A DNA stretch of 64,000 bases from IMGVR_UViG_3300036770_008729:1-64000, one strand, 5' to 3'; positions 3,927 through 63,853 are shown, counted from the first letter of the stretch. The notes: generated by a model not told the origin, from the sequence alone. Made by a program: numbers and translations.

Positions 3927-3935
3927 TATATATTA
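3927..3935 (-). promoter_or_regulatory. Putative phage late-promoter motif TAATATATA
   Basis: Same 9-mer as before several other structural or tagged genes; 21 nt upstream of ATG 3905. Confidence 0.45.
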
Positions 3936-5453: not shown

Positions 5454-5559
5454 ATTAGCATATATATTAATAATTTGTTAACAACTTCATCATAAACAAA
5501 AATCTTTTACATGAAACAATTTGTATATTTGTAATTAAAATAAAAAAAACAAAAACAAT

Positions 5560-7074: not shown

Positions 7075-7152
7075 ATCTTTATATATTAATTTTCTCTTTA
7101 TTATATTTTTCGTTATTTCGATTGTGTTAAACAAAATTTGACAATTTTTATA

Positions 7153-7161: not shown

Positions 7162-7249
7162 GTTTTATATGCTTTATGCTAATTAACTCGACCGGCCCAT
7201 GGTAGATGGGGGTTCCTGAAAAGGTTCTTCAATAGAGTAAAAAATATAT

Positions 7250-13200: not shown

Positions 13201-14227
13201 AGGTTCAAATGTAATTAGTGTTAGTTTTCAATCCGGTTTTTCTGGAGGTGTGATAAGTGTGTTAGTTTCTGGTGGTTGTGCTAGTCCAATAACTGTGTCT
13301 AAAACTTTATCACTTGGATATCCTTCAATGACAATTCAGGGCACAAGATGTGTTGAAAATGGTTGGTCTTATAACTACTCGGTTTCTTTTCCTAGTATGG
13401 CTTATTATTATAATGTTCAGAGTTATACTTGGGTTCCACCTGCAAATGCAGTTGTTAGTAGTGGTCAGGGAACTCAAAGTGCGACTATAACTTATCCTTC
13501 AAACTTTGAGTCCAATTGTACAAACAATATGTGTGACTCAATTAAAGTATATGTTCAGTTTCCTTGTGGTGTGAAATTGGTAAAAATGAAAATTGGTATG
13601 ACAACTTATGCTGCTAGCTCAATTATTGGTCCACCTTCAACTTGTGGTCCAGATACTGTTATGTTGAATGTTGCGGTTCCTACACCAGTAAGAGCAACTG
13701 GTTATATTTGGGGTTATCCAAATGGTGCTCAATTTTTAAACCTTAATGGTGGTGGGTCTTCAAATGATACTATTTTTGCAAAGATTAATTCTACTTACTT
13801 TGGTGGTAGTTTTAGTGTTATGAGTTTTAATCAATGTGGTTCAACTCCAATGAGATATTTTACCTTACCAAAGGTTTGTCCTACTGCTATTATTATAAAT
13901 AATGATCCTGAGATATCTACTGATATAATAACTACGATGAATGATATTCTTTCGGATCCAGAATATTTGGAAAATCAAAAAAGACCTTTGGATTTTATAA
14001 CTTATCCAAATCCTGGTCAAAACATAATAAATCTTAGAATATTTAAAGGAAATTCACCTTACTATTTGATTCAAATAACTAATTTGATTGGTCAAAATGT
14101 TTATGCCAAATTACATGAGGCTGAAGATGTTATTGATATTTCTAAATTTGAAGAAGGAGTATTCTTTATTTCAATTCAGGATAATGAAGGAAATAAATTA
14201 ACTAAACAATTAGTTATTGAGAGATAA
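7250..14227 (+). CDS. Large T9SS type A sorting-domain surface protein (Gly-rich domain, FN3-like repeats, Ig, SprB repeats, PKD-like domains)
   Basis: Signal peptide ending SFS-Q; two FN3-like units (LSW..VS.A.SYDVYFGT...YYWK.V); SprB repeats (VxCNGGxxGxIxLTVSGGTPxYTYxWSNG); PKD-like units; C-terminal YPNP...N.IGQ....IDIS....G.FFI.I......T..LVIE. Confidence 0.9.
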   Translation: MMMKFFKYIFLSLITLLSINSFSQTAMPASGTNVGASSGSWLVPANVYSIEIDAWGGGGAGAGKSTSGTGGLAGGAGGSRSTTTISVTPGQIIYFRVAASRPGTTGNAANGNDTWVNKSLNSAPTSSTDGVVAKGGASAVGTAAGVGSTTGCIGTSNQGGSGRVGGVTAGGGGSGAGTNLDGNDATGTAGATAPAGGGNGGNGHSSGGAGSAGSIPGGGGGGAYKNNNTSRSGGAGAAGRVILTYLAIPNCASLNAPSNNSTGISTNQVLSWAAVSGATSYDVYFGTSSTPPFVINQTGTSYTPTLSYSTQYYWKVVAKNSAGDALSCSTWNFTTKDPGCLSATYGQYPSTTYTPSCMGTVENITTTGYASEYSVVSLQNGETYTFSSSNSTDFITISNSAGTTVLAYGTTPVSWTSNLTGNVRFYTHTNEACGSSTTGRTRRVQCSIPPLCTSLISPSDGSTGQSIGTQLSWQSVSNANSYDVYFGTSSNPPFIQNQTGTTYSPSLSYNTTYYWKIVPKSSVGSATGCSVWSFTTGGPGCLNSTYGQYPTSVYNPGCTGTPENITTAGYAGEYSMVTLISNVNYTFSSSVATDFITISDELGTTILAYGTGSVSFTCLTDGNYRFYTHTDNACGSSSTSRVRRIQCSTPPPPANDLIANAQDVGLCGGSFNGNTKFATNSGDGPSCWTAPSENWTAPGVWYTVVGNGQNITASLCGSNYDTKLFIYTGTPGSLTCLTYNDDFCSTQSQVTFSSTLNTTYYMLVTGYGSAKGAFTFSVSLDPSVPVISTNPTNSTICPGSSWTFSVIASGNQGPLSYQWYLDGNVISGATQSTYDASTAGTYYVIVSNSCGATTQSSNATLSLFTLPTITVNSPEICFGNSTTIIASGGTSYSWSTGATTSSISVSPISTTNYIVTGTDVNGCQNTATSTVTVNPNPLVSLNTLSSTICSGGSGTNNITATPSSGNPTYNYQWQYFNGTSWVNTGTNVNTLNATPSATREYRVVINDSKSCLVTSSSHTVTVVPDPINPTLNTKSPNQNDICVGTGVSATFNSGSDGVGCQDIFQYSINSGISWSSYNPGNTISTSGLTQGTTVQIRGRRGNCSTGIGCSNNAYDVLVQWTIVTPPILSTNVSDVSCNGGNNGNINLTVSGSVGPFSFNWSGPNGFTSTLEDLSNVEAGSYTVVVSTPSGCQSTTSITVSQPSNMVLTIVGQNVACNGGSSGNIDLTVSGGTPTYTYSWSNGETTEDISNLSPGSYTVNVSDANGCIATSTVSISEPSLPISLSNTNQNVLCNGGSDGSIDLNVSGGTPGYTYSWSNGQTSEDISGLIAGTYSVLVTDFNGCTSTLTTTILQPSALSSSVAVYNVNCYGQNTGSINLTVSGGTPGYTYLWSNGQTSAYATALGAGTYSVLITDVNGCQSTNNATITQPTLLVASHTKVNLTCYNSNDGSITVTASGGTPPYTYGWTNGMTGSTISNLPAGNYTSYVSDSKGCTKLQTINVSQPSVLSSSVNSPTISTCQTTPVVITASVIGGTAPYTYLWSTGATTNTISVLPTQTTSYTIQITDSKGCVNNNIATVTVSQTVGLPIVGSVSGPTQAYNYMLNGSSATYSVNPVPGATSYIWYIPNNGVWVIGNNTSNILTVQFQSYFTGGDFYVAALDGCSISYSDTLNVSILDNPIIAGSSCGIPSGSIKTYYVSNSIPGLTYNWTPPYGSVILSGQGNDTVQIKYSSYFQSQSQLYVNTSTIYGVFTGEKEILRNASSPTAILGPQSICADGTTIYEYYVDSVATATSYIWGVPNGVSIVSGQSNDTIQVRFSTSYIGGNFSVMSVNQCGSSPMRYGTVSNSNQQFYPGTISGPGDLCPYLGTTVTYSVPLSAGYTYTWLAPSGMTILSGQGTNIITLQVSNSFTSGTLSVKLNEGCGDSPYSTRSLSTQQTNISVSQIQGLTNPCSIVGTGQTTTYSITPISGVNYNWSVPVNATIVSGQGSNVISVSFQSGFSGGVISVLVSGGCASPITVSKTLSLGYPSMTIQGTRCVENGWSYNYSVSFPSMAYYYNVQSYTWVPPANAVVSSGQGTQSATITYPSNFESNCTNNMCDSIKVYVQFPCGVKLVKMKIGMTTYAASSIIGPPSTCGPDTVMLNVAVPTPVRATGYIWGYPNGAQFLNLNGGGSSNDTIFAKINSTYFGGSFSVMSFNQCGSTPMRYFTLPKVCPTAIIINNDPEISTDIITTMNDILSDPEYLENQKRPLDFITYPNPGQNIINLRIFKGNSPYYLIQITNLIGQNVYAKLHEAEDVIDISKFEEGVFFISIQDNEGNKLTKQLVIER

Positions 14228-14855
14228 ACTTTTTGTCAATTATAGCAAATGAGAAATGTTGTTTTGGTGGTAAAAAAACTATAGTTTTATCTAAAATACC
14301 TTCAAGTTTTTTTCTAATCTTATCCATGACAGATATGACATTGTCATACAAAGTTACATTCAGGTTTGTTTTTTGAACAAAAACAAAACAAGGAATCCAC
14401 CCTGAATTCAATAATTCTGGAATTTCTCTACTTTCTTCTTTTATTTTATCCTTAAAGTAACTAGAAATTGTAGGATTTTCAAACACACGAACCCAATCCA
14501 ATTTTTGATGTTTCATGCTCAATCCAACAAGAGCAGCATTAATAGATTTGAGGTACTTTAAGTCACCAATATTATTATTATTAAAATAGTCTTCAGTTCT
14601 TAAAAATTTTGTACTTAAAGTCTCACCGTTACATACTAAGTTTTGAAATCCAACTCCTGGTTTTAATAGGTAAGGACTTAAATAACCAATTGAAAATTCA
14701 GGAAATAAATCTTCTAAATCAACCAAACAATCAAAAGTATCTTCTATATTTAAATCATCAAAAGCACTTTCGATTATTTCAATACCGGATTCACAATCTT
14801 GAAGTTCAAGCTGTTCAATAAAATTATATCTTTCAAAAGTTTTGATGTATTTCAT
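14214..14855 (-). CDS. Hypothetical protein with N-terminal tag (MKYIKTFERY)
   Basis: 213-aa ORF starting 3 nt after the neck-like gene. Confidence 0.75.
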   Translation of the reverse strand: MKYIKTFERYNFIEQLELQDCESGIEIIESAFDDLNIEDTFDCLVDLEDLFPEFSIGYLSPYLLKPGVGFQNLVCNGETLSTKFLRTEDYFNNNNIGDLKYLKSINAALVGLSMKHQKLDWVRVFENPTISSYFKDKIKEESREIPELLNSGWIPCFVFVQKTNLNVTLYDNVISVMDKIRKKLEGILDKTIVFLPPKQHFSFAIIDKKFISQ

Positions 14856-17095: not shown

Positions 17096-17143
17096 GACTT
17101 ATATATTAAATTGATAATTCTATTTAAATTTCTTCTAAATTAT

Positions 17144-17174
17144 TTTGTTAATAAATAAATCCTCCTTATATTTG
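17144..17174 (+). promoter_or_regulatory. Bacteroidota primary-sigma promoter (-33 TTTG, -7 TAnnTTTG)
   Basis: TTTG 17144-17147, 19-nt spacer, TATATTTG 17167-17174, upstream of ATG 17205. Confidence 0.7.
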
Positions 17175-18639: not shown

Positions 18640-18694
18640 TATTACAGAATTGGGTATATACAATTTGTAAAATTTACAAATTAATATATACCCT

Positions 18695-19471
18695 ATGAAG
18701 TATTTGAGAACTTTTATAGAAAATGCCGTTCCAGTAATTGGTGGAAACAAAGAATATAGAATGCAAAGTTTACCTCACAAAGGTGATCCAATAGCTTCTG
18801 ATGGTAAGATTTCTATTTTACAACAAGATTGGTTTGAAAAACTATTGCCAGATACATTAAAAGTGTCTTGTGATCCAAGATTATTTAAATTGAATTTTGA
18901 CCAATCATTAACTCCGGTTGAAAAAAAAGACTTTATTTTTGAAAAAAATGATTGTGCAATTAATAAAAGTATAATTCAGTTTAATTATTGGATGGTTCCT
19001 GATCATAATCCTGGTGAGGAATTAGAAGATGGTGAACCTTCTTGTATTGAATTTGATATATGTTCAGTTAAAACCTTAGAAGGTATAAAATTAATAGTGG
19101 ATATCACACATGGTGAAGACATTACTTTTCAGTTCTCAATTGAACCTCCTAATAAAATAAATGTTGGACATTATACCGGTGTTGGTTCTCTTTATGATAA
19201 TAAAACACATTTCGGATTCAAAGATGAATCAGTTAAGGATCTAGTTAATTTTTTTAATGCCTTCGATCATGGAATTAAATTGACCCAGAAAGATTTAGCA
19301 TTTTTAGATGAACATAGAGATAGTTATAAACATGATGTATTTAATAAAAAACATAACTATACTGATGATTCTGACTTGCTTAAATTTGGAAATTCCATGA
19401 AAGACAATGAGCCAAGTTTGAAAAATGTTCAATCATTCAGTAACTTTAATCCATCTACCATCAGTAAGTAA
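18695..19471 (+). CDS. Hypothetical protein with N-terminal tag (MKYLRTFIEN); paralog of 6571-7074
   Basis: 258 aa; TAATATATA at 18682-18690, 4 nt before the ATG. Confidence 0.75.
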   Translation: MKYLRTFIENAVPVIGGNKEYRMQSLPHKGDPIASDGKISILQQDWFEKLLPDTLKVSCDPRLFKLNFDQSLTPVEKKDFIFEKNDCAINKSIIQFNYWMVPDHNPGEELEDGEPSCIEFDICSVKTLEGIKLIVDITHGEDITFQFSIEPPNKINVGHYTGVGSLYDNKTHFGFKDESVKDLVNFFNAFDHGIKLTQKDLAFLDEHRDSYKHDVFNKKHNYTDDSDLLKFGNSMKDNEPSLKNVQSFSNFNPSTISK

Positions 19472-20822: not shown

Positions 20823-21537
20823 TTTATTAGGATATGATTTTAAATATCAACTTTATGTTGATTATGCTTCTTCAAATAGTTGTGAGACAAGTGGTTGTAT
20901 TGAAGAAGGCATTTGTCGCTGCACTGAAATTCATGACTGTCAAGTAACTGATGTCAAATTTAAAGATATATCAGATATCGTTTATAATTCATACTTTGAT
21001 AAAAGTAAATCTTCAAAAAGAAATATCAAAATTAACGAACTACTTTATGGTATCAATGAAGAAATAGACCGATATACAGTTGATAGAATTCTTAGAATTA
21101 ATAAAATCTGGCTTGATAAAAATTGGATAGTTCAAATTAATAATGGTTATTATGGTCAGGAAATAGATGTTGTGATATTAACATCTGAAATGGCTGATAA
21201 AATATCAAAAGAATTAGATACTGCTTTTGATATTTTAGATTTAAATAAAAGAGTAGAATTTCTTTTAGAGTTGGAGTATGGAAAACTTTTACCTCAATTA
21301 GAAAACTGTAGTTGGAAATTAATTAAATTAAAAAAAGATGATATTATTTTCCCCTCAAAATCTCATTTAGAGTTAGTTGGAAAAAAAGAATTAATTCACT
21401 ATTCTGCTCCTAAATATAATTCTATAAGAGCTGTTGTTACCAAAGATGGTAATTACTGGAAATTAGTAGATGGTTATCACAGATTATCTGCTATTAGTTT
21501 AGGTGATTTCTGGGTTTTAGCTGGAGAAAAAAGTTAA
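20815..21537 (+). CDS. Hypothetical protein with C-terminal ParB/Srx-like motif
   Basis: YWKLVDGYHRLSA (DGxHR) near the C-terminus; Cys cluster near the N-terminus. Confidence 0.55.
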   Translation: MISLLGYDFKYQLYVDYASSNSCETSGCIEEGICRCTEIHDCQVTDVKFKDISDIVYNSYFDKSKSSKRNIKINELLYGINEEIDRYTVDRILRINKIWLDKNWIVQINNGYYGQEIDVVILTSEMADKISKELDTAFDILDLNKRVEFLLELEYGKLLPQLENCSWKLIKLKKDDIIFPSKSHLELVGKKELIHYSAPKYNSIRAVVTKDGNYWKLVDGYHRLSAISLGDFWVLAGEKS

Positions 21538-23432
21538 TTTGGTAAAAATTCACCACTTTCTACCTGTTCTAATCTTTTAACTAATTTATTCAAAGATTTT
21601 TTAGCAGTTTCTTTCCCTTTTTCAATCATCTTTTTGTCAAATTTCAAAGGTAACTCTCCTGATGTATCATCATTTAATACTCTATTATAATGATTGATTT
21701 TACTACTAAGTCTTTTTTCTAATGTTTCAAGTAAATCCTCTATTTCCTTATGATAGTCAAAAAGATCCGTAACTCTTTTTTCAGATGTATCAACTTCCCA
21801 TCCGAATACAATTGCATCTTCTTCTTTCAGATATTCTACTCCTTCTAAGTTAACAGGGTTAGGATTATTTGATGCATCTAAAACCTTAAATGTTTCAATC
21901 TTAAACTTCTTCAAAATCCATTCTCCTTTATAGTCCTTCTCTAAAAGAGAATCATGGATGTATTGATAATCTGACCAATCTGAAAATCTATTTGATAGAA
22001 TTTCAGCCCAAGGTCTATCAAGAATTTTTGAACCCATATATAAAACTTCATCATCATCTTCGTGATACCAACTTGCTTCATCATGCGGTTCAATACTTCC
22101 ATCAGAATAAATATTATCAATAACTTTTTGAGCATCTTGCTCTAAGATTCTATCACCATAAGCCTCGGAATAAACTGAATCATCTTCATGTAAATAATCA
22201 TCATACCATTCACTATGAACTATAACATCACAATCCTCTGGGTAGTATCCTCTGTTTCTTCTTGAACCTCTGGTAACTTCAACACATCTATTATCCCATA
22301 GATAAGTATTTTCATAGTCAGACCAAACTGCTCTATCTTCTGGAATGTTTTCTCCGTGATAGTCAGACCAAACTCCACTACTAGTTTGACTATAACCACC
22401 ATCAGTATCGTCTAATAGATAGTGACCGTCATTATCTTCTTCATCATCGTTGTGTAATGTTCCATTATCAATGTCAAATCTTCTGAATGTGTCCATATAT
22501 GGATATCTTTTATATCCGTAAGTGGTTCCATTTTTAGGAAGTTGTATTTTCATATACACACCAATAGATTCTCCTTTATATGTCATAGATTGAAAAGAGT
22601 GGTGATTGTTATTGGTTTTATATCCCCAACCTTTATCATCTGCAAATTTTCTAAATTTAGCCACGTCGGATTCTTTGATGGTGTATTGTCTATCCATAAA
22701 CCATTCAGGTCCTTCGTATACTCTACCATTCTTTTTATATGAGGTGATTTTCCAGATTAGTGCTCTCCCGATTAGTTTACCATCTTCTAACAGAACAACC
22801 ATTTTACATAAATCAGGATTCTTAGAATACATTTCAAATACCGAAGCTGGTTTTTCTCTCATACAAGAATTTCCTAAATTACCACTAACTTCTTTGTAGT
22901 TATTGTAATCATACCAGAATGGAATTTGATCACCTTCAACTATTTCAAACTTTTCACCTGTTTGTTCAATAGAGGATTTGAACAAGTTAACAAAATCTTC
23001 TCTTTCTTTATCTGAATATTTACCTGGAAATAGTTTATTTACAAATCTTCCTATTGCTAATGGATTCCTAGATTTTAGGAAAAGGCCGGTTCCTCTATCA
23101 GATCCCTTTTTGTCGAGTGACCATAGCTCATCAGCTAAATCTACATCTGGATTTGTATCTACATAATCCATAGTTGGATATTTATCCATAATGATTTTTT
23201 TAGCATTTCTCATTGTTGAAAAACTAATATATCCTTCTTTATCTAAGTCAATAAATGTAATATCTGGTTTGATATCTTCCGCTTCAATTGAAATGATGTC
23301 TTTTGCAATAGCATTTTCTTTTGACAATTTAACTAGAATTCTTCTAACATCAGGAGAATAATAAAAGATAGACTCATTAATTAATCTTTCCAAAATTAGA
23401 TTTTCATTAAAATCATGATATTTATATAACAT
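21534..23432 (-). CDS. Large hypothetical phage protein with tag-like N-terminus, NSCMR / IGRALIW / FMDRQY motifs and an acidic Trp/Tyr repeat region
   Basis: 632-aa ORF; TAATATATA at 23438-23446. Confidence 0.7.
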   Translation of the reverse strand: MLYKYHDFNENLILERLINESIFYYSPDVRRILVKLSKENAIAKDIISIEAEDIKPDITFIDLDKEGYISFSTMRNAKKIIMDKYPTMDYVDTNPDVDLADELWSLDKKGSDRGTGLFLKSRNPLAIGRFVNKLFPGKYSDKEREDFVNLFKSSIEQTGEKFEIVEGDQIPFWYDYNNYKEVSGNLGNSCMREKPASVFEMYSKNPDLCKMVVLLEDGKLIGRALIWKITSYKKNGRVYEGPEWFMDRQYTIKESDVAKFRKFADDKGWGYKTNNNHHSFQSMTYKGESIGVYMKIQLPKNGTTYGYKRYPYMDTFRRFDIDNGTLHNDDEEDNDGHYLLDDTDGGYSQTSSGVWSDYHGENIPEDRAVWSDYENTYLWDNRCVEVTRGSRRNRGYYPEDCDVIVHSEWYDDYLHEDDSVYSEAYGDRILEQDAQKVIDNIYSDGSIEPHDEASWYHEDDDEVLYMGSKILDRPWAEILSNRFSDWSDYQYIHDSLLEKDYKGEWILKKFKIETFKVLDASNNPNPVNLEGVEYLKEEDAIVFGWEVDTSEKRVTDLFDYHKEIEDLLETLEKRLSSKINHYNRVLNDDTSGELPLKFDKKMIEKGKETAKKSLNKLVKRLEQVESGEFLPN

Positions 23433-23448
23433 AAATGTATATATTAAT

Positions 23449-25237: not shown

Positions 25238-25271
25238 TCAATTATAGTTGTTTTTTTTAATATATACAACT

Positions 25272-26378: not shown

Positions 26379-26430
26379 ATTGATAATAATTTTTTAATAT
26401 GTATATTTGTATATTAAATAAATAAAAATT

Positions 26431-27825: not shown

Positions 27826-29994
27826 ATGAATAAACTAGATTCACAAGAAAACTATCTTAAAAATGTTCCTAATATCAAGGCCGCATTAGAGGATGATGAT
27901 GAAGATGATGGGAAATCATTTTCAGGTAAGAAACCTGACAGTAAATCTAAAACACCTGTGTTAGATACATTCAGTCGCGATTTAACAAAAATGGCTGAAG
28001 AAGGTAAATTAGATCCTATTGTTGGACGTGAAAAAGAAATCGAGCGTGTTTCTCAAATTCTTTCTCGTAGAAAAAAGAATAATCCAATTTTAATTGGTGA
28101 GCCTGGTGTTGGTAAGTCTTCTATTGCTGAAGGATTAGCACTTAGAATTGTCCAGCGTAAAGTTAGTAGAATTCTTTATAACAAAAGAGTAGTTATGCTT
28201 GACTTAGCTTCAATGGTTGCTGGTACTAAATACCGTGGTCAATTTGAGGAAAGAGTTAAAGCTCTTATGGCTGAACTTGAAAAAGAGCCTAATATTATTC
28301 TTTTCATAGATGAAATTCATACTATGATTGGTGCAGGTGGAGCTTCTGGTTCATTAGATGCCTCAAATATGTTCAAACCAGCATTAGCTCGTGGTGAAAT
28401 TCAAATCATTGGTGCTACTACTTTAGATGAATATCGTAAACATATTGAAAAAGATGGTGCTTTAGAAAGAAGATTTCAAAAAGTTATGGTTGAACCAGCT
28501 TCTCCAGAAGAAACTTTACAAATCATTTCTAACATTAAAGATAAGTATGAGTTACATCACAATGTTACTTATACTGAAGATGCGATTAAAGCTTGTGTTG
28601 ATTTAACAAGTCGATATATGTCTGATCGTTTCTTACCAGATAAGGCTATTGATGCTTTAGATGAGGCTGGTTCTAGAGTTCATATTTCAAATATTGTAGT
28701 TCCTAAAGAAATCACAGATATTGAAAATAAAATTGTAGATATCAAAGATAAAAAGAATGAAGTAATTCGTTCTCAAAAGTATGAAGAAGCTGCTAAATTA
28801 AGAGATGTTGAAAGACAATTAAATGAATCTTTAGAAACTGCTAGAAAAGCTTGGGAAGAAGACTCTTCTAAAAACAGACAAACTGTTACAGAAGATAATG
28901 TTGCTGAAGTTGTTTCTATGATGACTGGTATTCCTTTACAAAAAGTAACTCTTAATGAAACTAACAAGTTAGGTAAAATGCAGGAGTCTATTATTGGTAA
29001 AGTAATTGGTCAAGATGAGGCTGTTAAAAAGATTGTTAAAGCTATCCAAAGAGGTCGTGTTGGTCTTAAAGATCCAAACAAACCAATTGGTTCATTTATG
29101 TTCTTAGGACCCACAGGTGTAGGTAAAACACAATTGGCTAAGGTATTGGCTAAGTATCTATTTGATTCAGAAGATTCTTTAATTAGAATTGATATGTCTG
29201 AGTATATGGAAAAATTCGCAGTGTCTCGATTAATTGGAGCTCCTCCAGGATATGTTGGACATGATGAAGGTGGTCAATTAACTGAAAAAGTTAGACGTAA
29301 ACCTTATTCAGTTATTCTACTTGATGAAATTGAGAAAGCTCATCCAGAGGTGTTTAACTTATTACTTCAAGTTTTAGATGATGGTCAATTAACTGATTCA
29401 TTGGGTAGAAAGGTTAATTTCAAAAACTCAATTATTATTATGACTTCTAATACAGGTTCACGTCAATTAAAAGATTTTGGAACTGGTGTTGGTTTCTCTA
29501 CTAAGAACAGAGTAGCGAAAGGACAAGAAGAGTCAAATGCTGTTATTGATAAGGAATTAAAAAAGAAGTTTTCGCCAGAATTCTTAAACCGTATTGATGA
29601 TGTTGTAATGTTTAACTCTCTTGTAAAAGAAGACATTAATAAAATTATTGAAATTGAGTTAAGAAAGTTAGTAAATCGTGTTGAAGAAATGGAATACACT
29701 TTAGATATCTCAACAGAAGCTGTTGATTATATCGCATCTGAAGGATTTGATCCAGAATATGGAGCAAGACCTTTGAAAAGAGCTATTCAACGATTGGTTG
29801 AAGATGTTTTAACTGAAGAGATTATACAATCTAATCCTTCAAAAGGATCTAAACTTTCTTTAACTTATAATAAGGAAGAAGATAAGATGATTGTGGAAAT
29901 CACATCAGATGAGCCTAAAAAAGAAATTGTAGAAGAAGCTAAGATTGTTAAGAAAAAAGCACCTAAAAAGAAAGATGATAAAGACGATAAGTAA
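27826..29994 (+). CDS. clpC: ClpC-type Hsp100 AAA+ ATPase lacking the N-terminal Clp-repeat domain
   Basis: GEPGVGKS / LFIDEIH (NBD1); UVR-type middle domain [12 protein letters not shown]; GPTGVGKT / [10 protein letters not shown] (NBD2); [11 protein letters not shown]. Confidence 0.93.
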
Positions 29995-55178: not shown

Positions 55179-55319
55179 TTTGCTTTTTATTTTTTTAATT
55201 TTCAAATCCATAAGATTTGATATTTGTTATATAGTTACTAATCAATAAAGTTTAATAAAATGTTAATTGTTTTTACTGAAAAAGTTACTAATAAATATAT
55301 ATCAAAAATTAAATTTGTT

Positions 55320-56282
55320 ATGGCTAAAAAATTTAAAATATTATCAATCGATGGTGGTGGTCTTAGAGGTATTGTTCCACTTCTTATTCTTAGAGAAATC
55401 GAAAATAAAACAGGTAAAAGAATTCACGAATTGTTTGACCTTATTACAGGAACATCTACTGGTGGCATTATTGCATGTGGTTTATCTTGCACAAAAGATG
55501 GCAAATCACCAGCAATTACTGTAGAAAAATTAATTGAACTCTACACTGCTGAAAGAGAAACAATTTTTCCATATAAAAGAAACTTCTTTCAAAAAATAGG
55601 CAGCGGTATTAATTCTTTATTTAATCCTAAGTTTTCACCAGATGGACTTGATCGTTTATTAACTGAATATTTTGATGATATGAGATTAAGTAATACATTA
55701 GTTCCAATTATTGTTACTTCTTATGATATCAAAAATAATGAAGTTGTAATGTTTAAAAGTAGAAGAAGTGGTGAGATTGGATATAACGCACTACTTAAAG
55801 ATGCTTGTAGATCAACATCTGCTGCTCCTACATACTTACCTTCCTATAAATTGGCTTTTGGTGGAAAACAAAGAGTTCTTATTGATGGTGGTGTTTATAT
55901 TAATAACCCTGCTCTTGGATCGGTATCTGATGCTTTAAGAAGCACTAAAGGATTAAAGATTTCCGATATAGAAGTTCTTTCACTTGGAACTGGAACTTAT
56001 CCAGCTGAGTTAGGGAAAAAAGATACTCCATCTTGGGGTTTAGTAAATTGGGCACAACCGATAACAAATATAATGATGCAAGCCACTTCTAATGCGACTG
56101 AGTATGAATGTAATGAGTTACTGAAAAAACATTTAAGAATACAATTAAAAATAGATGATCCTAAAATGACCGATATGTCAGATTCAAGACCTGGAACAGC
56201 TCAGTATATCATTGATAAAGTGGGTTCAGATATAATAAATAATAGTGAGATAATGAAAAAATTAGATGACTTTCTTAAATAA
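55320..56282 (+). CDS. Patatin-like phospholipase
   Basis: ILSIDGGGLRG, GTSTG nucleophile, STSAAPTYLP, IDGG; track start 55260; TAAATATATA at 55292-55301. Confidence 0.9.
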   Translation: MAKKFKILSIDGGGLRGIVPLLILREIENKTGKRIHELFDLITGTSTGGIIACGLSCTKDGKSPAITVEKLIELYTAERETIFPYKRNFFQKIGSGINSLFNPKFSPDGLDRLLTEYFDDMRLSNTLVPIIVTSYDIKNNEVVMFKSRRSGEIGYNALLKDACRSTSAAPTYLPSYKLAFGGKQRVLIDGGVYINNPALGSVSDALRSTKGLKISDIEVLSLGTGTYPAELGKKDTPSWGLVNWAQPITNIMMQATSNATEYECNELLKKHLRIQLKIDDPKMTDMSDSRPGTAQYIIDKVGSDIINNSEIMKKLDDFLK

Positions 56283-57033
56283 GATAGCTTGTAATTTCTT
56301 TAGTTATATCATTATTAGAATTGATTAAGTTTTTGTAAGTTTTATCATCTACCTTTACAAAGATTGGATTAAATCCAATATAAGTAATCACTTCATTGCC
56401 AAATGGCAGTTCTCCTTCAATGTAATCTTCTAACCAAAATTCTTTATATGGTCTCCAACCAGTAGCTTTATAGATTCTTATTAAAGAATCTATAACTATT
56501 TGTTTATTTTCTATAGAGAAGTTTCCACAATTAATGTTGATATAAGGAACCGCTGGTATTTTCCCATTTTCTATATTATCGACAAAAAGTTGCAATGTTG
56601 GTTTATGTGGCAATTTATTTAATTTACTTAAGTAAATAGCTTCCTCAACCTCGTTAAAATCAACTTCTTCTTCTATAATTTTTTTTGAATTTAATTCGTC
56701 GGGTCTTAGAAATATACTACCATATGTTTCATCATATATCAATTCACATTTTTTATTTTGCCAATCATCTGGATTAACTGACATTTCGTATGATATAGCA
56801 CTTCTAATCTCTCTTTTATATGTGTGTAGAATTTCATATTTTGGATATATAAAGTATCCTGAAGAAATAAAATTTGCCTTACTTATTATATTATCATCTG
56901 ATAAATCAAAAAGTAACTCTTGAAAATCTCTAAAATCAGGAAACTGACTTTTAGTTATGGCAAAATCGGCTAAATGTCTAGTATCAGAATTATTAATTTG
57001 TTCAAATAGTTTATATGGCCTAATATGCTTCAT
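56275..57033 (-). CDS. Hypothetical protein with N-terminal tag (MKHIRPYKLFE)
   Basis: 252 aa; last gene of the tagged array. Confidence 0.75.
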   Translation of the reverse strand: MKHIRPYKLFEQINNSDTRHLADFAITKSQFPDFRDFQELLFDLSDDNIISKANFISSGYFIYPKYEILHTYKREIRSAISYEMSVNPDDWQNKKCELIYDETYGSIFLRPDELNSKKIIEEEVDFNEVEEAIYLSKLNKLPHKPTLQLFVDNIENGKIPAVPYININCGNFSIENKQIVIDSLIRIYKATGWRPYKEFWLEDYIEGELPFGNEVITYIGFNPIFVKVDDKTYKNLINSNNDITKEITSYLI

Positions 57034-57914
57034 TAATAGTTGAGTAATATTTTTATTGTATAATCATAAATATCTGTATTTGTGAATTGTCTAGTTCCCC
57101 TAGCGTGGTCAAAAATAACATCACTATAATCTAAAGTAGTGAGTATAGATGGTAAAACTTTATCAAATTGACTTTCTAATTCTATTAAGTTCATCTTTCC
57201 TTTCATATAATTATCACCTTGACCAATTTCTATTACTATACAAGGTACATTCATTTCAATAATCTTATCTATTGAGTAACTTCTCTTCTTATCAATATCT
57301 GAATTATGAATAACTGAATATTTACCATTTGATGTTTCAAAAGAATCACCTGATTTAAATCCATAGTTATCAATATTAAAGTTAGCACATTGCCATTTTG
57401 GTTCTGTGACATAATAACTTTCATCACTTTGCCTCATTAAAACTGAAGGATATGAACCAATGTAAAATGTTGGAAAAGCAATATCTTTTATAATATGAAT
57501 CATAGCTCTGAAATAATCTTTCTCATCTCTATTTCTAACTGTTAGAATTCCATTATATTTATATTGAATTTCTTTGTTATAATTATCTGAATCTCCATAA
57601 GCGATACAAGTTGATACCCATTTAGATTTTTCATGTGGTAAATTATCAAATACATCCATAAGTAATCTATCTTCTACATAATAAACATCTACTTTATTTA
57701 GAGCCGTGAATATTCTATCTACATGATTTTTTATCTTATTATAGTAACCATCCCCAATAAAATGATTTGTCCATTTTTCTAAATCTTTAATTGGTTTTCT
57801 ACCCCACTCAAAATCTTTAAGATCTTCAATCCAATCATGAATTCCGTATTTAGAATCTAATCCAATATTCATATTTTCATTTATAAAGTGATTATATTTC
57901 TTAATTATTTTCAT
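57033..57914 (-). CDS. Hypothetical protein with N-terminal tag (MKIIKKYNHFINE)
   Basis: 293 aa, overlaps its neighbours. Confidence 0.75.
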   Translation of the reverse strand: MKIIKKYNHFINENMNIGLDSKYGIHDWIEDLKDFEWGRKPIKDLEKWTNHFIGDGYYNKIKNHVDRIFTALNKVDVYYVEDRLLMDVFDNLPHEKSKWVSTCIAYGDSDNYNKEIQYKYNGILTVRNRDEKDYFRAMIHIIKDIAFPTFYIGSYPSVLMRQSDESYYVTEPKWQCANFNIDNYGFKSGDSFETSNGKYSVIHNSDIDKKRSYSIDKIIEMNVPCIVIEIGQGDNYMKGKMNLIELESQFDKVLPSILTTLDYSDVIFDHARGTRQFTNTDIYDYTIKILLNY

Positions 57915-58191
57915 AGATTTTATTTATTAAAATTGCTAAATTAATATCTTTTTCTGTAACAATATCACCAGAATCATGCGTTGAAAGAGTTACAATAACT
58001 TTGTCAAACATCCATTCAATTTTTGGATGATGATTTTGTGATTCTGATTCTGTTGCCACTTGATTAATAAATTGTCTCGCTGATTCAAATGAATCAAAAG
58101 TAAACTCACTGGTTAATTTTTTACCATCATTTTTCCAACTTTTTAAATCTTCAGTTGATTCATATATTCTATAAGATTTTAGGTGCTTCAC
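57901..58191 (-). CDS. Pterin-4-alpha-carbinolamine dehydratase-like protein with N-terminal tag (MKHLKSYRIYE)
   Basis: W......L...F.F.SF..A..F...V....E..NHHP.I......V...LSTHD.G..VT.KD..LA. Confidence 0.85.
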   Translation of the reverse strand: MKHLKSYRIYESTEDLKSWKNDGKKLTSEFTFDSFESARQFINQVATESESQNHHPKIEWMFDKVIVTLSTHDSGDIVTEKDINLAILINKIYENN

Positions 58192-58631
58192 TTTCTAAAA
58201 ATTATTTTAATGGATTGGTTTTCTGCCATCCATTGACCAACTTCTAAATCTTCAAGTTCTATTTTCTCTACATTATCTTCTGATGGATCTGAACTGTATT
58301 CATCTTGTAAAAGTATTGTATATTTCCAATCTTTCATAAACTCAATAGACCTTCTAATACAATCCATTAATTCTGTAGATATTTGAACTTCTCTATAATC
58401 TGATACGTATTCTTCATCATCATCAAATCCAGGATCGAAATCTCTATGATATGGTTCTTCATCTCCAAATGAAATATAAACTGTGTAGTAATTAGATATA
58501 TCATCACCATCTGCCCAAGCAATCCACTCTTCATCAGGATGACTATGTTTAACATCTAAAAAGATGTCTTCTAAATCAGCTTTGATTCTATCAAAGTTCT
58601 CGAATAACTTATATGTTTTTAAATGTTTCAT
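58188..58631 (-). CDS. Acidic hypothetical protein with N-terminal tag (MKHLKTYKLFE)
   Basis: 147 aa, 4-nt overlaps with neighbours. Confidence 0.75.
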   Translation of the reverse strand: MKHLKTYKLFENFDRIKADLEDIFLDVKHSHPDEEWIAWADGDDISNYYTVYISFGDEEPYHRDFDPGFDDDEEYVSDYREVQISTELMDCIRRSIEFMKDWKYTILLQDEYSSDPSEDNVEKIELEDLEVGQWMAENQSIKIIFRK

Positions 58632-58879
58632 TTCTCTTCTCTTCTCTTCTTCATTAAATCTTTAATAAATTCTTTTATCTCATCATTGCAATCTGGAGTA
58701 GGTAAGAAGCCATATCCTCTCATTCTTGATGACCATTTGATCTGACCAATAACCTGACCATCTTTACTAACATTATAAGTATCGGTTTTAGCACCTTTCT
58801 TTTTAGTTTGTAAAGTGAACTTTAATTTAGAAACTTCTTTTTTAGTTTCAAATAATTTATATGTCTTTAAATGTATCAT
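58628..58879 (-). CDS. Basic hypothetical protein with N-terminal tag (MIHLKTYKLFE)
   Basis: 83 aa. Confidence 0.72.
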   Translation of the reverse strand: MIHLKTYKLFETKKEVSKLKFTLQTKKKGAKTDTYNVSKDGQVIGQIKWSSRMRGYGFLPTPDCNDEIKEFIKDLMKKRREEK

Positions 58880-58902
58880 TTGAAAAGTTTTAGATGTTTC
58901 AT
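58876..58902 (-). other. 8-codon minigene consisting only of the tag (MKHLKLFK*)
   Basis: ATG AAA CAT CTA AAA CTT TTC AAA TGA; 4 nt downstream of TAATATATA (58907-58915); its TGA overlaps the next ATG. Confidence 0.55.
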
Positions 58903-58926
58903 AAAGTATATATTAAATACACAAAA

Positions 58927-59460
58927 TTAAATACTTAATTCAACCTTTTCTCCAGATGGGGGTGAGAAAGAAACACTTTTCAAGTTATTAAACTTATATT
59001 TATCGTCTAAATTTATATAATTTTTACCAGTACCTTTATTTACATAGCAAATTGTTATGTGTGGTTTGTAATCGGGATAAGATTCTTCATTCGGTAGTGT
59101 TTTTAACATATCATGTAGCTTCTGTAAATCAGGAGTTTTCTTAACATTAAACTTAACTACATCATAATCTTTATTCTCGAATAAATCTATACCTTCAATT
59201 TCTATGTTTAGTGGTTTTGCAAATGAGGTCAAAATCTCTTGAACTTGTTCTGATGTTACTTCTGGTTTTAATCCATATAATAAAGTCAAATGTGGAAAAT
59301 CTTCTATACCCTGATTTTCCTCTGGATTATAAATATCTTCTTTTTTTATTTTAGAAGTTATTTCATCCCAATTTGTGAAAGGAATCTTTAACATCGCACA
59401 ACCAAATTCGTGCTGACCTGATGATTCTTTAATAAACTGTATATAACTTTTTATCCTCAT
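58927..59460 (-). CDS. 2H phosphoesterase (Acb1/gp57B or LigT-like) with N-terminal tag (MRIKSYIQFIKES)
   Basis: Two HxT motifs, PHLTLLYG and YKPHITICY; ATG 59460 gives an ATGA overlap (track start 59487). Confidence 0.8.
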   Translation of the reverse strand: MRIKSYIQFIKESSGQHEFGCAMLKIPFTNWDEITSKIKKEDIYNPEENQGIEDFPHLTLLYGLKPEVTSEQVQEILTSFAKPLNIEIEGIDLFENKDYDVVKFNVKKTPDLQKLHDMLKTLPNEESYPDYKPHITICYVNKGTGKNYINLDDKYKFNNLKSVSFSPPSGEKVELSI

Positions 59461-59996
59461 ACTGCTCCTTGTATTATTATTCTCCACTCACCACCTTTAT
59501 TATTATAAGAAAATTTAAAATAAACTCCTATTTCAGATTGTATTCTTTTTACTGCTACTAAAAAGTCATCAAATTCCTGTGTAATCTTTTTTCTTCTTTT
59601 ATCTTGTTCGGCCATTTCTAACTCAGCCTCTTTTTTAGTCATTACATCTATCGATGGATTATCTTCAAATTCCATTTCTTGAGAGTCCCAAGTTATTTCA
59701 CCATCTGATGATATTCTACCAGTCATATCTACAAATTCTGTTCTTGCTCCTGATGTGATATAAACATCTTCCTTTGGCATCATTCTACAATTAAAATTAG
59801 GAAATCCCCAAATAGAAATTGACATATCATCACCAGACCAATCGGTTCTATTTTCAATCCAACTCCATCCATTATCTTCAAATTCTATGAAACATTCTTT
59901 AATTGTATCCAATACCTGCTGATACACTTTACGCATGTGAATTGCATATGGATGAGTTTCTTCAGTATTTTCATTAAATCTTTTTAAATGTTTCAT
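59457..59996 (-). CDS. Hypothetical protein with N-terminal tag (MKHLKRFNEN)
   Basis: 179 aa. Confidence 0.75.
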   Translation of the reverse strand: MKHLKRFNENTEETHPYAIHMRKVYQQVLDTIKECFIEFEDNGWSWIENRTDWSGDDMSISIWGFPNFNCRMMPKEDVYITSGARTEFVDMTGRISSDGEITWDSQEMEFEDNPSIDVMTKKEAELEMAEQDKRRKKITQEFDDFLVAVKRIQSEIGVYFKFSYNNKGGEWRIIIQGAV

Positions 59997-60012
59997 TTCA
60001 TATATTTATTAA

Positions 60013-60933
60013 TTATTCTAATCCTAATTCTTGGAGTATTTCATGCAATTTATCTATTTTTATCATTATTGCTTCATCCTCAAACCATGATTCTAAACCT
60101 TCACCTTCATATTCAAAATCATCATCTAAATCAGCATATAATTTCATTGTTGAGATTACATCACCTAATTTAAATTTATTGAATACAGGGTCTAGTATCT
60201 TATTAAGATTTCCTAAAAGTGAAAGACTATTATCCCACAATCTTCCAAAGTATTTTGTTTTGATAGCATCACTAACTTTACAGGTATCTAGATAAGTTTT
60301 TAATTTATTCCAATCAGGATTTACATAAGTTTTAGTCCAGTTTGGAGTTAGCTGGTTTCCAAGTTTATCAAATCTATCTATACGAGTTTCTATATGAGCG
60401 TAATCTCTTAAAACTCCTAAGTCACTTAATAAAGAAGATGTATATCGAAAGAGAGAAGGTCTTCTCATATCTTCTTCTCTAAATGCGGCTTTATTTGGTA
60501 TTTTACCAAAACAATTCCAGAAATCACCTCTATCACCAGTGGCGACTTTTGTTGTATCAAAAGGAATGACTACATAATCGACAGATTTACCTTTTACAAA
60601 TCCTGCACCATGTGTGAAAGCTCTTCTTGAAGAAGCGCAACATAAACCTTTATTTCTTCTCGGCCAACCTTTCCACGAGTCTAAGTTGGAAGTAAGTGTA
60701 TTATGAACATCGTTTGATGAGTATGGGTCTATTCTAAGAGATGTTGATGACTTTGGATCTACTAAAACAAAATCACCTCTATTTTCATCTTTTCTTAAAA
60801 TAAGAACATCATCAGTATAATCATCACCCCAAGATAAAAACTTTTTGCAATTTTGTTGCAATATTTTTACTACTTCTTCTTTAGTGAGAATAGTTGATTT
60901 TAAAGTTTCATTAAATCTTCTTAAATGTTTCAT
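60013..60933 (-). CDS. Hypothetical protein with N-terminal tag (MKHLRRFNET)
   Basis: 306 aa. Confidence 0.75.
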   Translation of the reverse strand: MKHLRRFNETLKSTILTKEEVVKILQQNCKKFLSWGDDYTDDVLILRKDENRGDFVLVDPKSSTSLRIDPYSSNDVHNTLTSNLDSWKGWPRRNKGLCCASSRRAFTHGAGFVKGKSVDYVVIPFDTTKVATGDRGDFWNCFGKIPNKAAFREEDMRRPSLFRYTSSLLSDLGVLRDYAHIETRIDRFDKLGNQLTPNWTKTYVNPDWNKLKTYLDTCKVSDAIKTKYFGRLWDNSLSLLGNLNKILDPVFNKFKLGDVISTMKLYADLDDDFEYEGEGLESWFEDEAIMIKIDKLHEILQELGLE

Positions 60934-61631
60934 TTTAGGTATTTATCAAAAACTTCTTCAATTTTTGGTTCTAATTTTGTATAATCTATATCAAATGTTT
61001 TGGGCATAATAGATACTATCTCATCTATGTTATATGGCTCTTTTCCAATAGTATACCAACTTCTATTCTTTTTCATCCATAGATAAAAAAGAATATAAGC
61101 ATTTGATTTTTGAATATATTCTTCAGTGTCAATTATTTTATCTAATGACCATTTCTTAATTTTTTCAACAGTTCTTTTTTCACAATCAACTTCTATATCA
61201 ATAGATGTTCTTATTTCCTCGGCAATTACATTTAGATCAACATCCTCTTTTCCAGCCAACCATTCATCAGTTTGAACTAATCCTATATTATTAGTCCAAG
61301 TAGGATCGTTTTCTAAAAACTGATCCATGTGAGATGATTCGTGTAATAATATAAGAAGCCAATAAGATATATCTTTTCCCATAGCACAAGCTAGAAGTCT
61401 ATTATCTCCATCAAAATAACCATTACAAAATATATTTGGTCCTCCTAAAGAAACACCTTTTTCAGGTGATAGAAAAAGCTTAATGTTATTTTCTTTGGCA
61501 AAGTTTTTTAAGTGGTCAATAAATAATTTAACTTTTTCAATCTCTTCTTTTGTTAATTTACCAAAGTTAAACTCACCACCGTGTGGATTATCTATTTCCT
61601 GAAAGTCTTCAAATAATTTTAAGTATCTCAT
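60930..61631 (-). CDS. Putative HExxH metallopeptidase-like protein with N-terminal tag (MRYLKLFEDF)
   Basis: LLILLHESSHMDQ, downstream EVDCE; TAATATATA at 61638-61646. Confidence 0.65.
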   Translation of the reverse strand: MRYLKLFEDFQEIDNPHGGEFNFGKLTKEEIEKVKLFIDHLKNFAKENNIKLFLSPEKGVSLGGPNIFCNGYFDGDNRLLACAMGKDISYWLLILLHESSHMDQFLENDPTWTNNIGLVQTDEWLAGKEDVDLNVIAEEIRTSIDIEVDCEKRTVEKIKKWSLDKIIDTEEYIQKSNAYILFYLWMKKNRSWYTIGKEPYNIDEIVSIMPKTFDIDYTKLEPKIEEVFDKYLK

Positions 61632-61655
61632 AAAAGCTATATATTAAAATAAAAA

Positions 61656-61675
61656 AACCATCTATAAAGATGGTT
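61656..61675 (-). terminator. Intrinsic terminator separating the methyltransferase from the tagged-gene array
   Basis: AACCATCT-ATAA-AGATGGTT hairpin with a T-run on the minus strand. Confidence 0.7.
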
Positions 61676-62399
61676 CTTCTAGTCTAAGATTAGCTAACTC
61701 ACAATACTCTTTAGTAATGTCAAATCCGACATACCTTCTGCCTAACTTATTGGCGACTGATGTAGTTGTTCCACTGCCATTAAATGGATCAACCACAACT
61801 CCGCCAATGTAAGAGTGCATCTTAATACATCTTTTAGCCAACTCTTCCGGAAAGGGAGCTGGGTGTTTTCTTTTCTTAGCACTTTCTGGTGCGATTACCC
61901 AAAGACCATTTGTCCAGTTAATGAACTCTTCTTTAGTTAAGTCGGTTTGACCTTTCTCAACTATCTTTGGAGAACCTTTATGAAAATTAATAATCATCTC
62001 AAAGGGTGGAAGAATTCTTGGATTGCTTGGACTCATCCAACTACCCCAGGCAGTTCTTTTAGGAATCTGATTTTTATTCCAAATAATAAACTCTCTAAAA
62101 GTAAATCCAGCTTCTTGAAATAACCTTGTGAATGTTGAGTAACTTGGTTCATTCAATTGAGATTGAAAGCAACCAATTTGTAGGCAAAATCTACCACCAT
62201 CTTTTAATACACGGAAGCTTTCGGAAATCCAAACTTTACACCATTCATAATAAGCCTCTAACTTCATAGAGTCATCATGGTCTTGATAACTGATATTAAG
62301 ATTGTATGGTGGTGAAGTAAAGATTAAATCAACAGAATTATTTTCCATTGATTTGAAACCTGAGATGCAATCCTGATTGTATATTTTATTAAATTCCAT
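61662..62399 (-). CDS. Orphan amino (N4-C/N6-A, beta-class) DNA methyltransferase
   Basis: DLIFTSPPYN (motif IV) precedes HPAPFP...VVDPFNGSGTT (motif I). Confidence 0.9.
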   Translation of the reverse strand: MEFNKIYNQDCISGFKSMENNSVDLIFTSPPYNLNISYQDHDDSMKLEAYYEWCKVWISESFRVLKDGGRFCLQIGCFQSQLNEPSYSTFTRLFQEAGFTFREFIIWNKNQIPKRTAWGSWMSPSNPRILPPFEMIINFHKGSPKIVEKGQTDLTKEEFINWTNGLWVIAPESAKKRKHPAPFPEELAKRCIKMHSYIGGVVVDPFNGSGTTTSVANKLGRRYVGFDITKEYCELANLRLEEPSL

Positions 62400-62869: not shown

Positions 62870-63853
62870 ATGATTTCACTTATTATTCTTTCAGTTTCAA
62901 TCCTAATCTCTTTAGGATTTCTCTATTCAACTAGAGATAATGCCTTTACTATCACACAAGATAAGTATGGCTCAACAAATAAACAATTTAAAATTACATG
63001 GTTAACAAAACCAGTTCTTATTTTAATAATTGGTATATTGACCTCTATCATTCAACCATTCGCTTTAGAGCGAGTTGATGCTGGTCATGTTGGATTAAAA
63101 GTTCAATTATCCGGAGACAATCGAGGTATATCTGATTATCAATATAAAACAGGTTGGGTAGTTCAGAATACTTGGATTGAAAAATTATATGAGTTTCCTA
63201 CATTCCAACAACATATTGAATATGGTGACCAAACTGTAATCACAAAAGGTGGTTTCTCTGCTATCATTAAACCTACATTCAACTACTCACTTAAATCAGA
63301 TGCTGTTGGTGATATGTTTGAACAATTACGATTAGGAGTTAAAGAAATTGAGCAGGGTTGGCTTATGACTGCTATTGTTGGTTCAGTAAATGATGTTGCT
63401 AATAGATGGGTAGTTGATGATATCTTTAATAAAAGAGAAGAGTTTGAATCAGCCATTATCACAGAGTGTAATAAAAGAACTTCTAAATGGTTTATTATCT
63501 CTCAATTAAGAACTAACATTGTTCCACCTGACGCACTTAAATCAGCCATCGAAGCAAAAACAAAAGCTGTTCAAGATGCTCAAGCCGCTATTCAACAAGC
63601 ACTTGTTGCAGAAGCTCAGGCTAAAAAGAAAATTGCAATTGCTAGAGGTGACTCGGCTTCTGTTGTTATTAATGCTTCGGGTCAGGCGGCAGCTACTATT
63701 ATCACAGCTGATGGTGAAGCTAAGGCGATGAAATTAAAACAAGCACAATTATCTCAGTTGTATATAGATTATATCAGAGCAACCAATTGGGATGGTAAGT
63801 ATCCTCAAACGATGTTAGGTGGTAATACATCCACTTTGTTGAATATAAAATAA
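62870..63853 (+). CDS. SPFH (band 7/prohibitin) domain membrane protein
   Basis: VDAGHVGLKV, coiled-coil AQAA..Q...AEAQA....A.A.G, WDGKYP C-terminal motif. Confidence 0.88.
   Translation: MISLIILSVSILISLGFLYSTRDNAFTITQDKYGSTNKQFKITWLTKPVLILIIGILTSIIQPFALERVDAGHVGLKVQLSGDNRGISDYQYKTGWVVQNTWIEKLYEFPTFQQHIEYGDQTVITKGGFSAIIKPTFNYSLKSDAVGDMFEQLRLGVKEIEQGWLMTAIVGSVNDVANRWVVDDIFNKREEFESAIITECNKRTSKWFIISQLRTNIVPPDALKSAIEAKTKAVQDAQAAIQQALVAEAQAKKKIAIARGDSASVVINASGQAAATIITADGEAKAMKLKQAQLSQLYIDYIRATNWDGKYPQTMLGGNTSTLLNIK

Follow-up and report, generated by a model that had tools for sequence, protein, structure and literature searches.

T-even phages encode internal proteins that have only an N-terminal leader in common (PMC3012670, PMC12373910). 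In T4, these capsid-targeting sequences (CTS) are 10-20 residues long, and proteases of the gp21 family cut after Glu (PMC5694885). The T4 record (AF158101) gives MKTYQEFIAE, with A as the next residue, as the start of internal proteins IPII and IPIII, as a preliminary description of the locus studied here had stated, and MKTFKEF... as the start of IPI. Here, a stretch of 64,000 nt of viral DNA (IMGVR_UViG_3300036770_008729:1-64000, hereafter the window) was analysed. At 56275-61631 it carries an array of nine open reading frames (ORFs), all on the minus strand, whose bodies are unrelated and whose N-termini share a short tag. Judged from the sequence evidence given below, the shared N-terminus is on balance probably a portable, cleavable capsid-targeting propeptide of the T4 CTS type, used at very large scale. 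The literature knows T-even CTS and giant-phage propeptides; a literature search with the motif string and for huge-phage internal proteins returned no description of this tag or its scale.

The tag follows the pattern M-[KR]-x-[LI]-[KR]-x-[YF]...hydrophobic-x-Glu and was found at all nine N-termini of the array (Table 1). The nine minus-strand ORFs were all found where the preliminary description had placed them, with the N-termini it had listed, and the hydrophobic-x-Glu ending that it had reported was present in nine of nine, in each case as [LFIY]-x-E. Its statement that the bodies are unrelated also held, since they include a predicted 2H phosphoesterase, a pterin-4a-carbinolamine dehydratase (PCD), an HExxH protein and others that match nothing. 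The ORFs are mostly chained through ATGA or GTGA overlaps, and the array is therefore one or two operons. The terminator that had been proposed between the array and the upstream methyltransferase gene was recovered as a hairpin with a T-run, and the array does have its own TAATATATA motifs.

The source of the window is a relative of two metagenomic 'huge phages' of 635-642 kb. The window encodes a T4-type gp32 (Pfam gp32), the best matches of which were in LR756502.1 (642 kb, 81% identity) and LR745206.1 (635 kb, 77%); at the DNA level, the window matched these two genomes in short stretches only. Several studies have metagenomes of subsurface, freshwater or lake origin in which near-identical DNA was present. 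LR756502.1, the closest complete relative, was taken whole, and a simple greedy caller gave 963 ORFs.

The frequency of the tag was compared between N-termini and internal Met sites. In the window, a regular expression for the tag matched the starts of 11 genes among the 74 that begin with ATG, or 12 if the GTG-started one is counted, but at no point among 293 internal Met sites; this excludes a chance origin (binomial probability ~1e-18). In LR756502, the same expression matched 108 of 963 N-termini versus 9 of 3656 internal Met sites, and a profile built from these 108 matches recovered 157 of 963 N-termini versus 5 of 3319 internal controls. The match rate of the internal Met controls was thus 0.15-0.25%. 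The tagged genes of LR756502 are spread over many arrays around the genome, and the window array is one of many in a genome-wide system covering 11-16% of the genes. Every sequence-level prediction of the preliminary description that could be tested, for a modular array of head-packaged proteins, was borne out; its picture of a single local 'effector cassette' fell short of the extent seen. After removal of the tag, the bodies of the 108 genes fell into 96 blastp clusters, the largest with 8 members. The residue corresponding to protease position P3 was F, I, Y or L in 86 of the 108 tags, and position P1' was mostly S, E, N, D, A or G, that is, Ser and other small or polar residues. Two window genes behind TAATATATA (5070-5453 and 21534-23432, both on the minus strand) have degenerate, sub-threshold tag-like starts, MEYLLGFDDFKLNE and MLYKYHDFNENLILE; their tags may have decayed or diverged, and one of the two proteins is 632 aa long.

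The content of the arrays changes while the tag persists. In LR756502 and LR745206, the region upstream of gp32 likewise carries arrays of tagged ORFs with different gene sets. Only array genes 4 and 8 have syntenic orthologs there, and the others are scattered or absent, so that gene content turns over rapidly between close relatives. In contigs from three other metagenomes, the match to the array ended at the gene 1 start codon (break at 61633) and unrelated sequence followed, indicating that what lies upstream of the array varies among populations and changes just where the gene starts. Over four DNA metagenomes, strain variation, breaks at the gene 1 ATG and joints at tags were seen; the sides of the joints measured only 21-34 nt, may be cross-matches between tags, and were not counted as evidence.

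The tag is portable within and between families. Short (...[FYI]NES) and long (...YK[LI]FES) variants interchange within single families, and one PCD homolog carries two tags in tandem. Among 3072 PCD homologs found in an exhaustive search, only about 8 of the best 150 representatives were tagged, and these were the closest relatives. In every case the tag stood at the very start of the protein, also in proteins of 210-235 aa that have their PCD domain at the C-terminus. Cellular-type PCDs at 50% identity lacked it. The only homologs of gene 4 in cultured phages (Maribacter phages Molly and Colly, Microbacterium and Rhodococcus phages) carried no tag where checked, the 2H homolog of Maribacter phage Molly included. 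A degenerate 27-nt pattern for MKHLKK[FY]NE matched 74 stretches in AT-rich viral contigs of 4-508 kb, and 199 of the 967 ORFs around these stretches were tagged. In cellular genomes (596 Gb, 185,579 species), the same pattern matched twice, both times by chance inside a gene, in NrdR-like and glycogen-phosphorylase-like proteins as assigned by reading the translations. The tag therefore appears essentially virus-specific, in agreement with the difference between bacterial and phage homologs that the preliminary description had proposed to look for. Eight replication or recombination homologs, the structural genes and the sugar-cluster genes included no tagged member. The preliminary description had also raised a comparison with metabolic genes, and the replication and sugar-pathway genes were those compared.

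The tag was also sought in other phages, in 40-kb samples of the huge phages. The LR756501 and Lak-A1 samples contained no tag, T4 contained none or one, and LR756504 contained two. Under the standard bacterial code, ORFs covered 66-70% of the LR756504 and Lak-A1 loci versus 90-96% in other phages, which suggests stop-codon reassignment and makes the tag counts there unreliable. In Maribacter phage Molly_1, four small proteins (622-993, 1027-1311, 11286-11570 and 11572-12000) share the N-terminus M[DK]T..IKS[ML][IV]ES... and look like a small paralog family rather than bearers of a portable tag.

Judged from codons and alignments, conservation acts on the tag peptide and not on the DNA. The synonymous codons for K, L, I, F, Y, H and R were used in near-identical proportions in tags and gene bodies, with AAA somewhat over-represented at codon 2 of the tag, and a GTG start was found in array gene 7 and in one of its homologs. 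In the gene 4 family (34 homologs, ~50% identity), Y6, F9 and E12 of the tag were invariant, as were the catalytic HxT motifs. Column conservation was 0.85 for the tag versus 0.73 for the body in this family, and 0.83 versus 0.67 in the gene 2 family. In AlphaFold2 models, run with family alignments, the predicted local distance difference test score (pLDDT) of gene 4 stayed under 50 over residues 1-15 and exceeded 90 in the body; for gene 2, residues 1-7 were below 50 and the mean was 86.6. The tag is thus strongly conserved yet unpacked against its own protein, which is the signature of a linear recognition motif. Conservation at the DNA or RNA level (a recombination site, a regulator site or a leaderless start signal) was considered as the main cause and rejected, because synonymous codons vary and operon-internal genes are fully tagged.

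Tagged genes belong to a distinct promoter class. In the window, TAATATATA occurred 11 times against 5 expected, each time just upstream of a gene and in the same orientation; in LR756502, no 8-mer was more enriched in front of genes than AATATATA, which showed a 23-fold excess and preceded 195 of them. Operons headed by TTAATATATA contained 96 of the 108 tagged genes of LR756502 (89%) versus 304 of the 855 untagged ones, and operons with the host-type motif TAnnTTTG contained 4 tagged versus 216 untagged genes. Moreover, TTAATATATA directly precedes the genes for terminase, portal, protease and capsid protein and neighbouring genes of the virion module in LR756502, and the homologs of gp39, gp61, gp43, gp44, gp46, gp47 and UvsX mostly lack it. 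This class fits co-expression of the tagged genes with the head genes. The second motif, TAnnTTTG (often TATATTTG), marks a separate gene class and resembles the -7 element of Bacteroidota promoters; it hints at the host phylum and at genes read early by the host polymerase, and the host is probably a member of the Bacteroidota, judged from these promoters. A sigma-70 promoter scan gave fewer matches than shuffled sequence and was uninformative.

LR756502 encodes head machinery of the T4 type. Queries with T4 proteins found the large terminase, the sheath and the portal, together with a weak gp21 match, and Pfam assigned Portal_T4 (1e-57) and Gp23 (4e-28). Between the portal and gp23 genes lies a 699-aa protein that matched phrog_207, 'head maturation protease' (6e-28). 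Its blastp alignment with T4 gp21 (2e-4) covered GE(L/F)(N/D)HP and VSSR(G/A), here GEFDHP and VSSRAAG, motifs that we take to hold the catalytic His and Ser. The match to Pfam Peptidase_S77 was below the cut-off (20.2 vs 27 bits), and a PDB sequence search with the N-terminal domain found nothing. In this gene (LR756502 225272-227371), the gp21-type protease domain takes up only roughly the first 140-400 residues; the extended C-terminal remainder is possibly a scaffold fused to it, and such a scaffold would be the natural docking partner for the tag. As for the peptide, the Y-x-x-F-I-x-E variant of array genes 4 and 8 (MRIKSYIQFIKE and MKIIKKYNHFINE) aligns with T4 MKTYQEFIAE, over ten residues, which are too few for a statistical test of homology. 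The N-terminal region of the LR756502 capsid protein reads ...EFHQINE and then N, which resembles the ending of this tag variant, a likeness that is only suggestive.

Under the capsid-targeting reading, the phage-specific TTAATATATA motif would drive transcription of the nine genes along with that of the virion genes. The first 8-13 residues, which are basic and aromatic and end in hydrophobic-x-Glu, would dock each protein on the scaffold or core of a T4-type prohead, and a head protease of the gp21 family would cut after the tag Glu. The mature, mostly small and soluble cargo would stay in the head and enter the next host with the DNA, where it could serve host takeover or counter-defence ahead of all phage gene expression. 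The suggestion of an anti-defence role comes from two members only, the predicted 2H phosphodiesterase and the M78-like metallopeptidase. In LR756502, transmembrane-like segments were found in 3.7% of tagged versus 13% of untagged proteins (p=0.003), and the median isoelectric point (pI) was 5.0 for tagged bodies versus 5.9 for the rest. The wider proposal, that huge phages belonging to this clade use one short cleavable tag to load 100-150 different and mostly unrelated proteins (11-16% of the gene set) and inject them with the DNA, is put forward tentatively and with somewhat less than even expectation.

Several observations weigh against capsid targeting. The head genes and the protease were seen in the relative that shares 81% gp32 identity, not in the window, and the commoner MKHLK...NES variant is only loosely like the T4 leader. 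The distance from motif to ATG was 4-8 nt in 46 of 54 promoter-proximal tagged genes and 18-28 nt at the head genes; transcripts with the short spacing may be leaderless, which would give one motif with two leader classes. The one argument for a 'late' timing of the class is that head genes use it, and this phage was absent from the public RNA runs that were searched. The cargo of the array has pI 4.1-5.9 except for gene 5, and mature T4 IPI-III have 9.0-9.7. The small basic DNA-associated cargo of T4 is thus not matched here, although this property characterises the T4 proteins and not the way in which they are targeted. An ordinary-looking pterin dehydratase is among the cargo. Finally, to our knowledge, 100-150 different packaged proteins would exceed any known phage.

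Some of these points bear on other explanations of the tag. It could be a real address for a different partner, such as a phage chaperone, an unfoldase, a protease or a phage-made compartment, or it could be an N-terminal degron, an explanation that we consider possible though unlikely. Any recognition system could use a conserved linear motif that stays unpacked on a wide range of unrelated soluble proteins; the window encodes a two-ring Clp-type AAA+ protein (Table 1), the acidic cargo departs from the basic character of T4 internal proteins, and there are many tagged proteins for a capsid to carry. However, neither the AAA+ protein nor a compartment was found to be linked to the tag, and a different partner would leave the hydrophobic-x-Glu end, the likeness to T4, the gp21-type protease and the promoter class shared with the head genes as coincidences.

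Alternatively, the peptide could be functionless and reflect how the genes are acquired or expressed: a mobile cassette made up of a promoter, a near-leaderless start and the opening codons could have been spread by recombination or favoured in translation initiation. The closeness of the motif to the ATG would be expected from such a cassette, as would the tag-only mini-ORF behind one motif, the homolog with a tandem double tag, the divergence of other contigs exactly at the gene 1 ATG with joints at tags, and the somewhat frequent AAA at codon 2. On the other hand, synonymous sites of the tag vary as those of the bodies do, and Y, F and E are invariant across homologs of ~50% identity. Moreover, complete tags are also found on genes that lack their own promoter and start in an ATGA overlap, as do seven of the nine in the array and half of the tagged genes overall, and initiation efficiency does not explain aromatic residues and Glu at a fixed spacing. 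We therefore regard the cassette as improbable. Least credible by far is that the tag is only a first helix conserved within a single, expanded family of paralogs, or that it is artefactual and arises from ORF calling or AT composition. The genome has a G+C content of 27-31%, MK starts are common and a few tagged proteins are paralogous; this explanation is nevertheless contradicted by the rate at which internal Met sites of the same proteins match and by the 96 clusters, which include PCD, 2H and HExxH folds, and the samples of T4, Lak-A1 and LR756501 speak against it as well.

The members of the array were examined individually. Array gene 1 gave a weak match to Pfam DUF6782, and its Atlas neighbours were Peptidase_M78 and MPTase-PolyVal proteins. 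Its viral clusters (~200 aa) align from residue 24 or beyond, i.e., with the tag excluded. The protein thus seems to resemble metallopeptidases of the M78/ImmA type and 'MPTase-PolyVal', which is a lead. Array gene 2 had 135 homologs with MKHLKSINES or MKYLKxYKLFE tags, and its AlphaFold2 model had no PDB fold match at E<1. A fold of the ART/RES type was considered for it and dropped, since the Atlas neighbours reached TM 0.35-0.38 only and the model was confident without a PDB match. For array gene 4, the ATG start was used, and a longer GTG start is open too. It matched Pfam 2_5_RNA_ligase2 (9e-13) and Acb1 (1.2e-6, 28.7 bits against a cut-off of 27), and H57/T59 and H134/T136, its two HxT motifs, were invariant in the 34 homologs. 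Its Foldseek neighbours were LigT, viral 2',5'-oligoadenylate (2-5A) and cyclic GMP-AMP (cGAMP) phosphodiesterases and Acb1. Gene 4 is therefore predicted, from sequence and model, to be a 2H phosphoesterase of the LigT, cyclic-nucleotide phosphodiesterase or Acb1-like fold. The fold neighbours mix RNA-repair, 2-5A and cGAMP enzymes, and the PDB sequence match to Acb1 had E=0.011, so that a pre-loaded enzyme degrading immune nucleotides would be an attractive but unproven role. The mini-ORF MKHLKLFK* in front of gene 5 may have been left behind when tags recombined, or may serve as an upstream ORF for coupling on a transcript that is nearly leaderless. Gene 5 is the array member closest in character to a T4 internal protein. 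Gene 7 has the PCD fold (Pfam Pterin_4a, 2e-22). Family and fold searches gave no assignment for genes 3, 5, 6, 8 and 9.

Among the other genes of the window, about 25 co-oriented genes of the sugar-nucleotide and glycosyltransferase type lie at 30098-50146 on the plus strand; they have no tag and no internal TTAATATATA, and the size of this cluster is unusual for a phage. An ORF of 2324 aa (7253-14227, plus strand) has a signal-peptide-like N-terminus, MMKFFKYIFLSLITLLSINSFS, and is preceded by the TATATTTG motif.

Table 1. Positions of the array genes, upstream motifs and other features in the window
Feature	Position	Strand	Description
SPFH/band-7 membrane protein	62870-63853	+	host-like accessory gene
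DNA methyltransferase gene upstream of array	61662-62399		Pfam N6_N4_Mtase 1.3e-49
Terminator-like hairpin and T-run	61650-61681	-	closes methyltransferase gene; hairpin scan and sequence reading
TAATATATA promoter-like motif 'P2'	61638-61646	-	6 nt before ATG of array gene 1
Array gene 1	60930-61631	-	233 aa; tag MRYLKLFE, next residue D; HExxH (LLHESSHMDQ)
Array gene 2	60013-60933	-	306 aa; tag MKHLRRFNE, next residue T
Array gene 3	59457-59996	-	179 aa; tag MKHLKRFNE, next residue N; acidic
Array gene 4	58927-59460	-	177 aa; tag MRIKSYIQFIKE, next residue S; predicted 2H phosphoesterase
Second TAATATATA motif, inside array	58907-58915	-	upstream of a tagged start
Tag-only mini-ORF MKHLKLFK*	58876-58902	-	eight codons; 4 nt after TAATATATA; overlaps gene 5 ATG (AAATGA)
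Array gene 5	58628-58879	-	83 aa; tag MIHLKTYKLFE, next residue T; basic, pI 9.9
Array gene 6	58188-58631	-	147 aa; tag MKHLKTYKLFE, next residue N; very acidic
Array gene 7	57901-58191	-	96 aa; GTG start; tag (M)KHLKSYRIYE, next residue S
Array gene 8	57033-57914	-	293 aa; tag MKIIKKYNHFINE, next residue N; syntenic orthologs in both relatives
Array gene 9	56275-57033	-	252 aa; tag MKHIRPYKLFE, next residue Q; end overlaps convergent patatin gene
Patatin-like phospholipase	55260-56282	+	host-like accessory gene; convergent with array
Two-ring ClpA/ClpB-type AAA+ ATPase	27826-29994	+	host-like accessory gene
Tagged gene outside array	18695-19471	+	MKYLRTFIEN; TAATATATA 4 nt upstream
Tagged gene outside array	14214-14855	-	MKYIKTFERY; second gene in motif-headed operon
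Tagged gene outside array	6571-7074	-	MKYLKKFESY; TAATATATA 5 nt upstream
TTAATATATA, examples	3927-3935, 7080-7088, 17100-17108, 18682-18690, 23438-23446, 25258-25266		
TAnnTTTG, examples	5532-5539, 7245-7252, 17167-17174, 26402-26409 and others		

For most huge-phage genes, no role is known. If the tag does load proteins into heads, hundreds of orphan families across many AT-rich viral contigs would gain an address in the virion interior, and the tagged families would be candidates for immediate host takeover or counter-defence, for example a pre-loaded 2H phosphodiesterase. The 'first-minute proteome' of these phages would then be an order of magnitude more diverse than that of any studied phage, and the tag alone would list the injected cargo of uncultivated phages from metagenomes. 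Very large capsids and genomes might partly exist for a large protein payload, and the tag would serve as a compact natural peptide for loading foreign proteins into large capsids. Even with a destination other than the capsid, one linear motif on about one-seventh of the genes would be a recognition system worth identifying.

The proposed system shares features with several known ones. Cargo-loading peptides of encapsulins are likewise short, disordered terminal peptides that load unrelated cargo into a shell of the HK97 fold; however, they belong to a cellular system, are mostly C-terminal and uncleaved, and bind the shell protein. The polyvalent proteins of phages and conjugative elements, with MPTase and ART domains, bring ready-made counter-defence enzymes into the cell with the DNA, and array gene 1 has neighbours of the M78/MPTase-PolyVal type. 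The candidate effectors here are separate small tagged proteins, whereas those of polyvalent proteins are domains of one giant polypeptide. In phiKZ-like giants (phiKZ, 201phi2-1, SPN3US), about 50 capsid proteins are present, many of which are ejected, and cleavage after Glu is the work of a gp21-related protease (PMC5694885, PMC10052503). These phages have family-specific propeptides of considerable length, often more than 100 residues, in contrast to the one short common tag described here, and their cleavage motif is A/S/G-x-E, whereas position P3 is F/I/Y/L here.

The T-even internal proteins come closest. Both systems have a short N-terminal leader (10-20 residues in T4) on otherwise unrelated small proteins, and in both it ends in hydrophobic-x-Glu, the gp21 protease site in T-even phages and a pattern read from the genes here. 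The ip loci of T-even phages are hypervariable accessory loci with rapid turnover (PMC3012670, PMC12373910), and the gp20/gp21/gp23-type head machinery is common to T4 and the relative of our phage. The consensus here differs from the T4 CTS in an MK[HY][LI]K insert and in its short ...[FYI]NES and long ...YK[LI]FES variants. The cargo is mostly acidic here and basic in T4, and the protease of the relative, unlike T4 gp21, is a 699-aa fusion protein. The scale differs as well, with 100-150 tagged genes per genome here versus 3 in T4 and about 10 known across the T-even phages.

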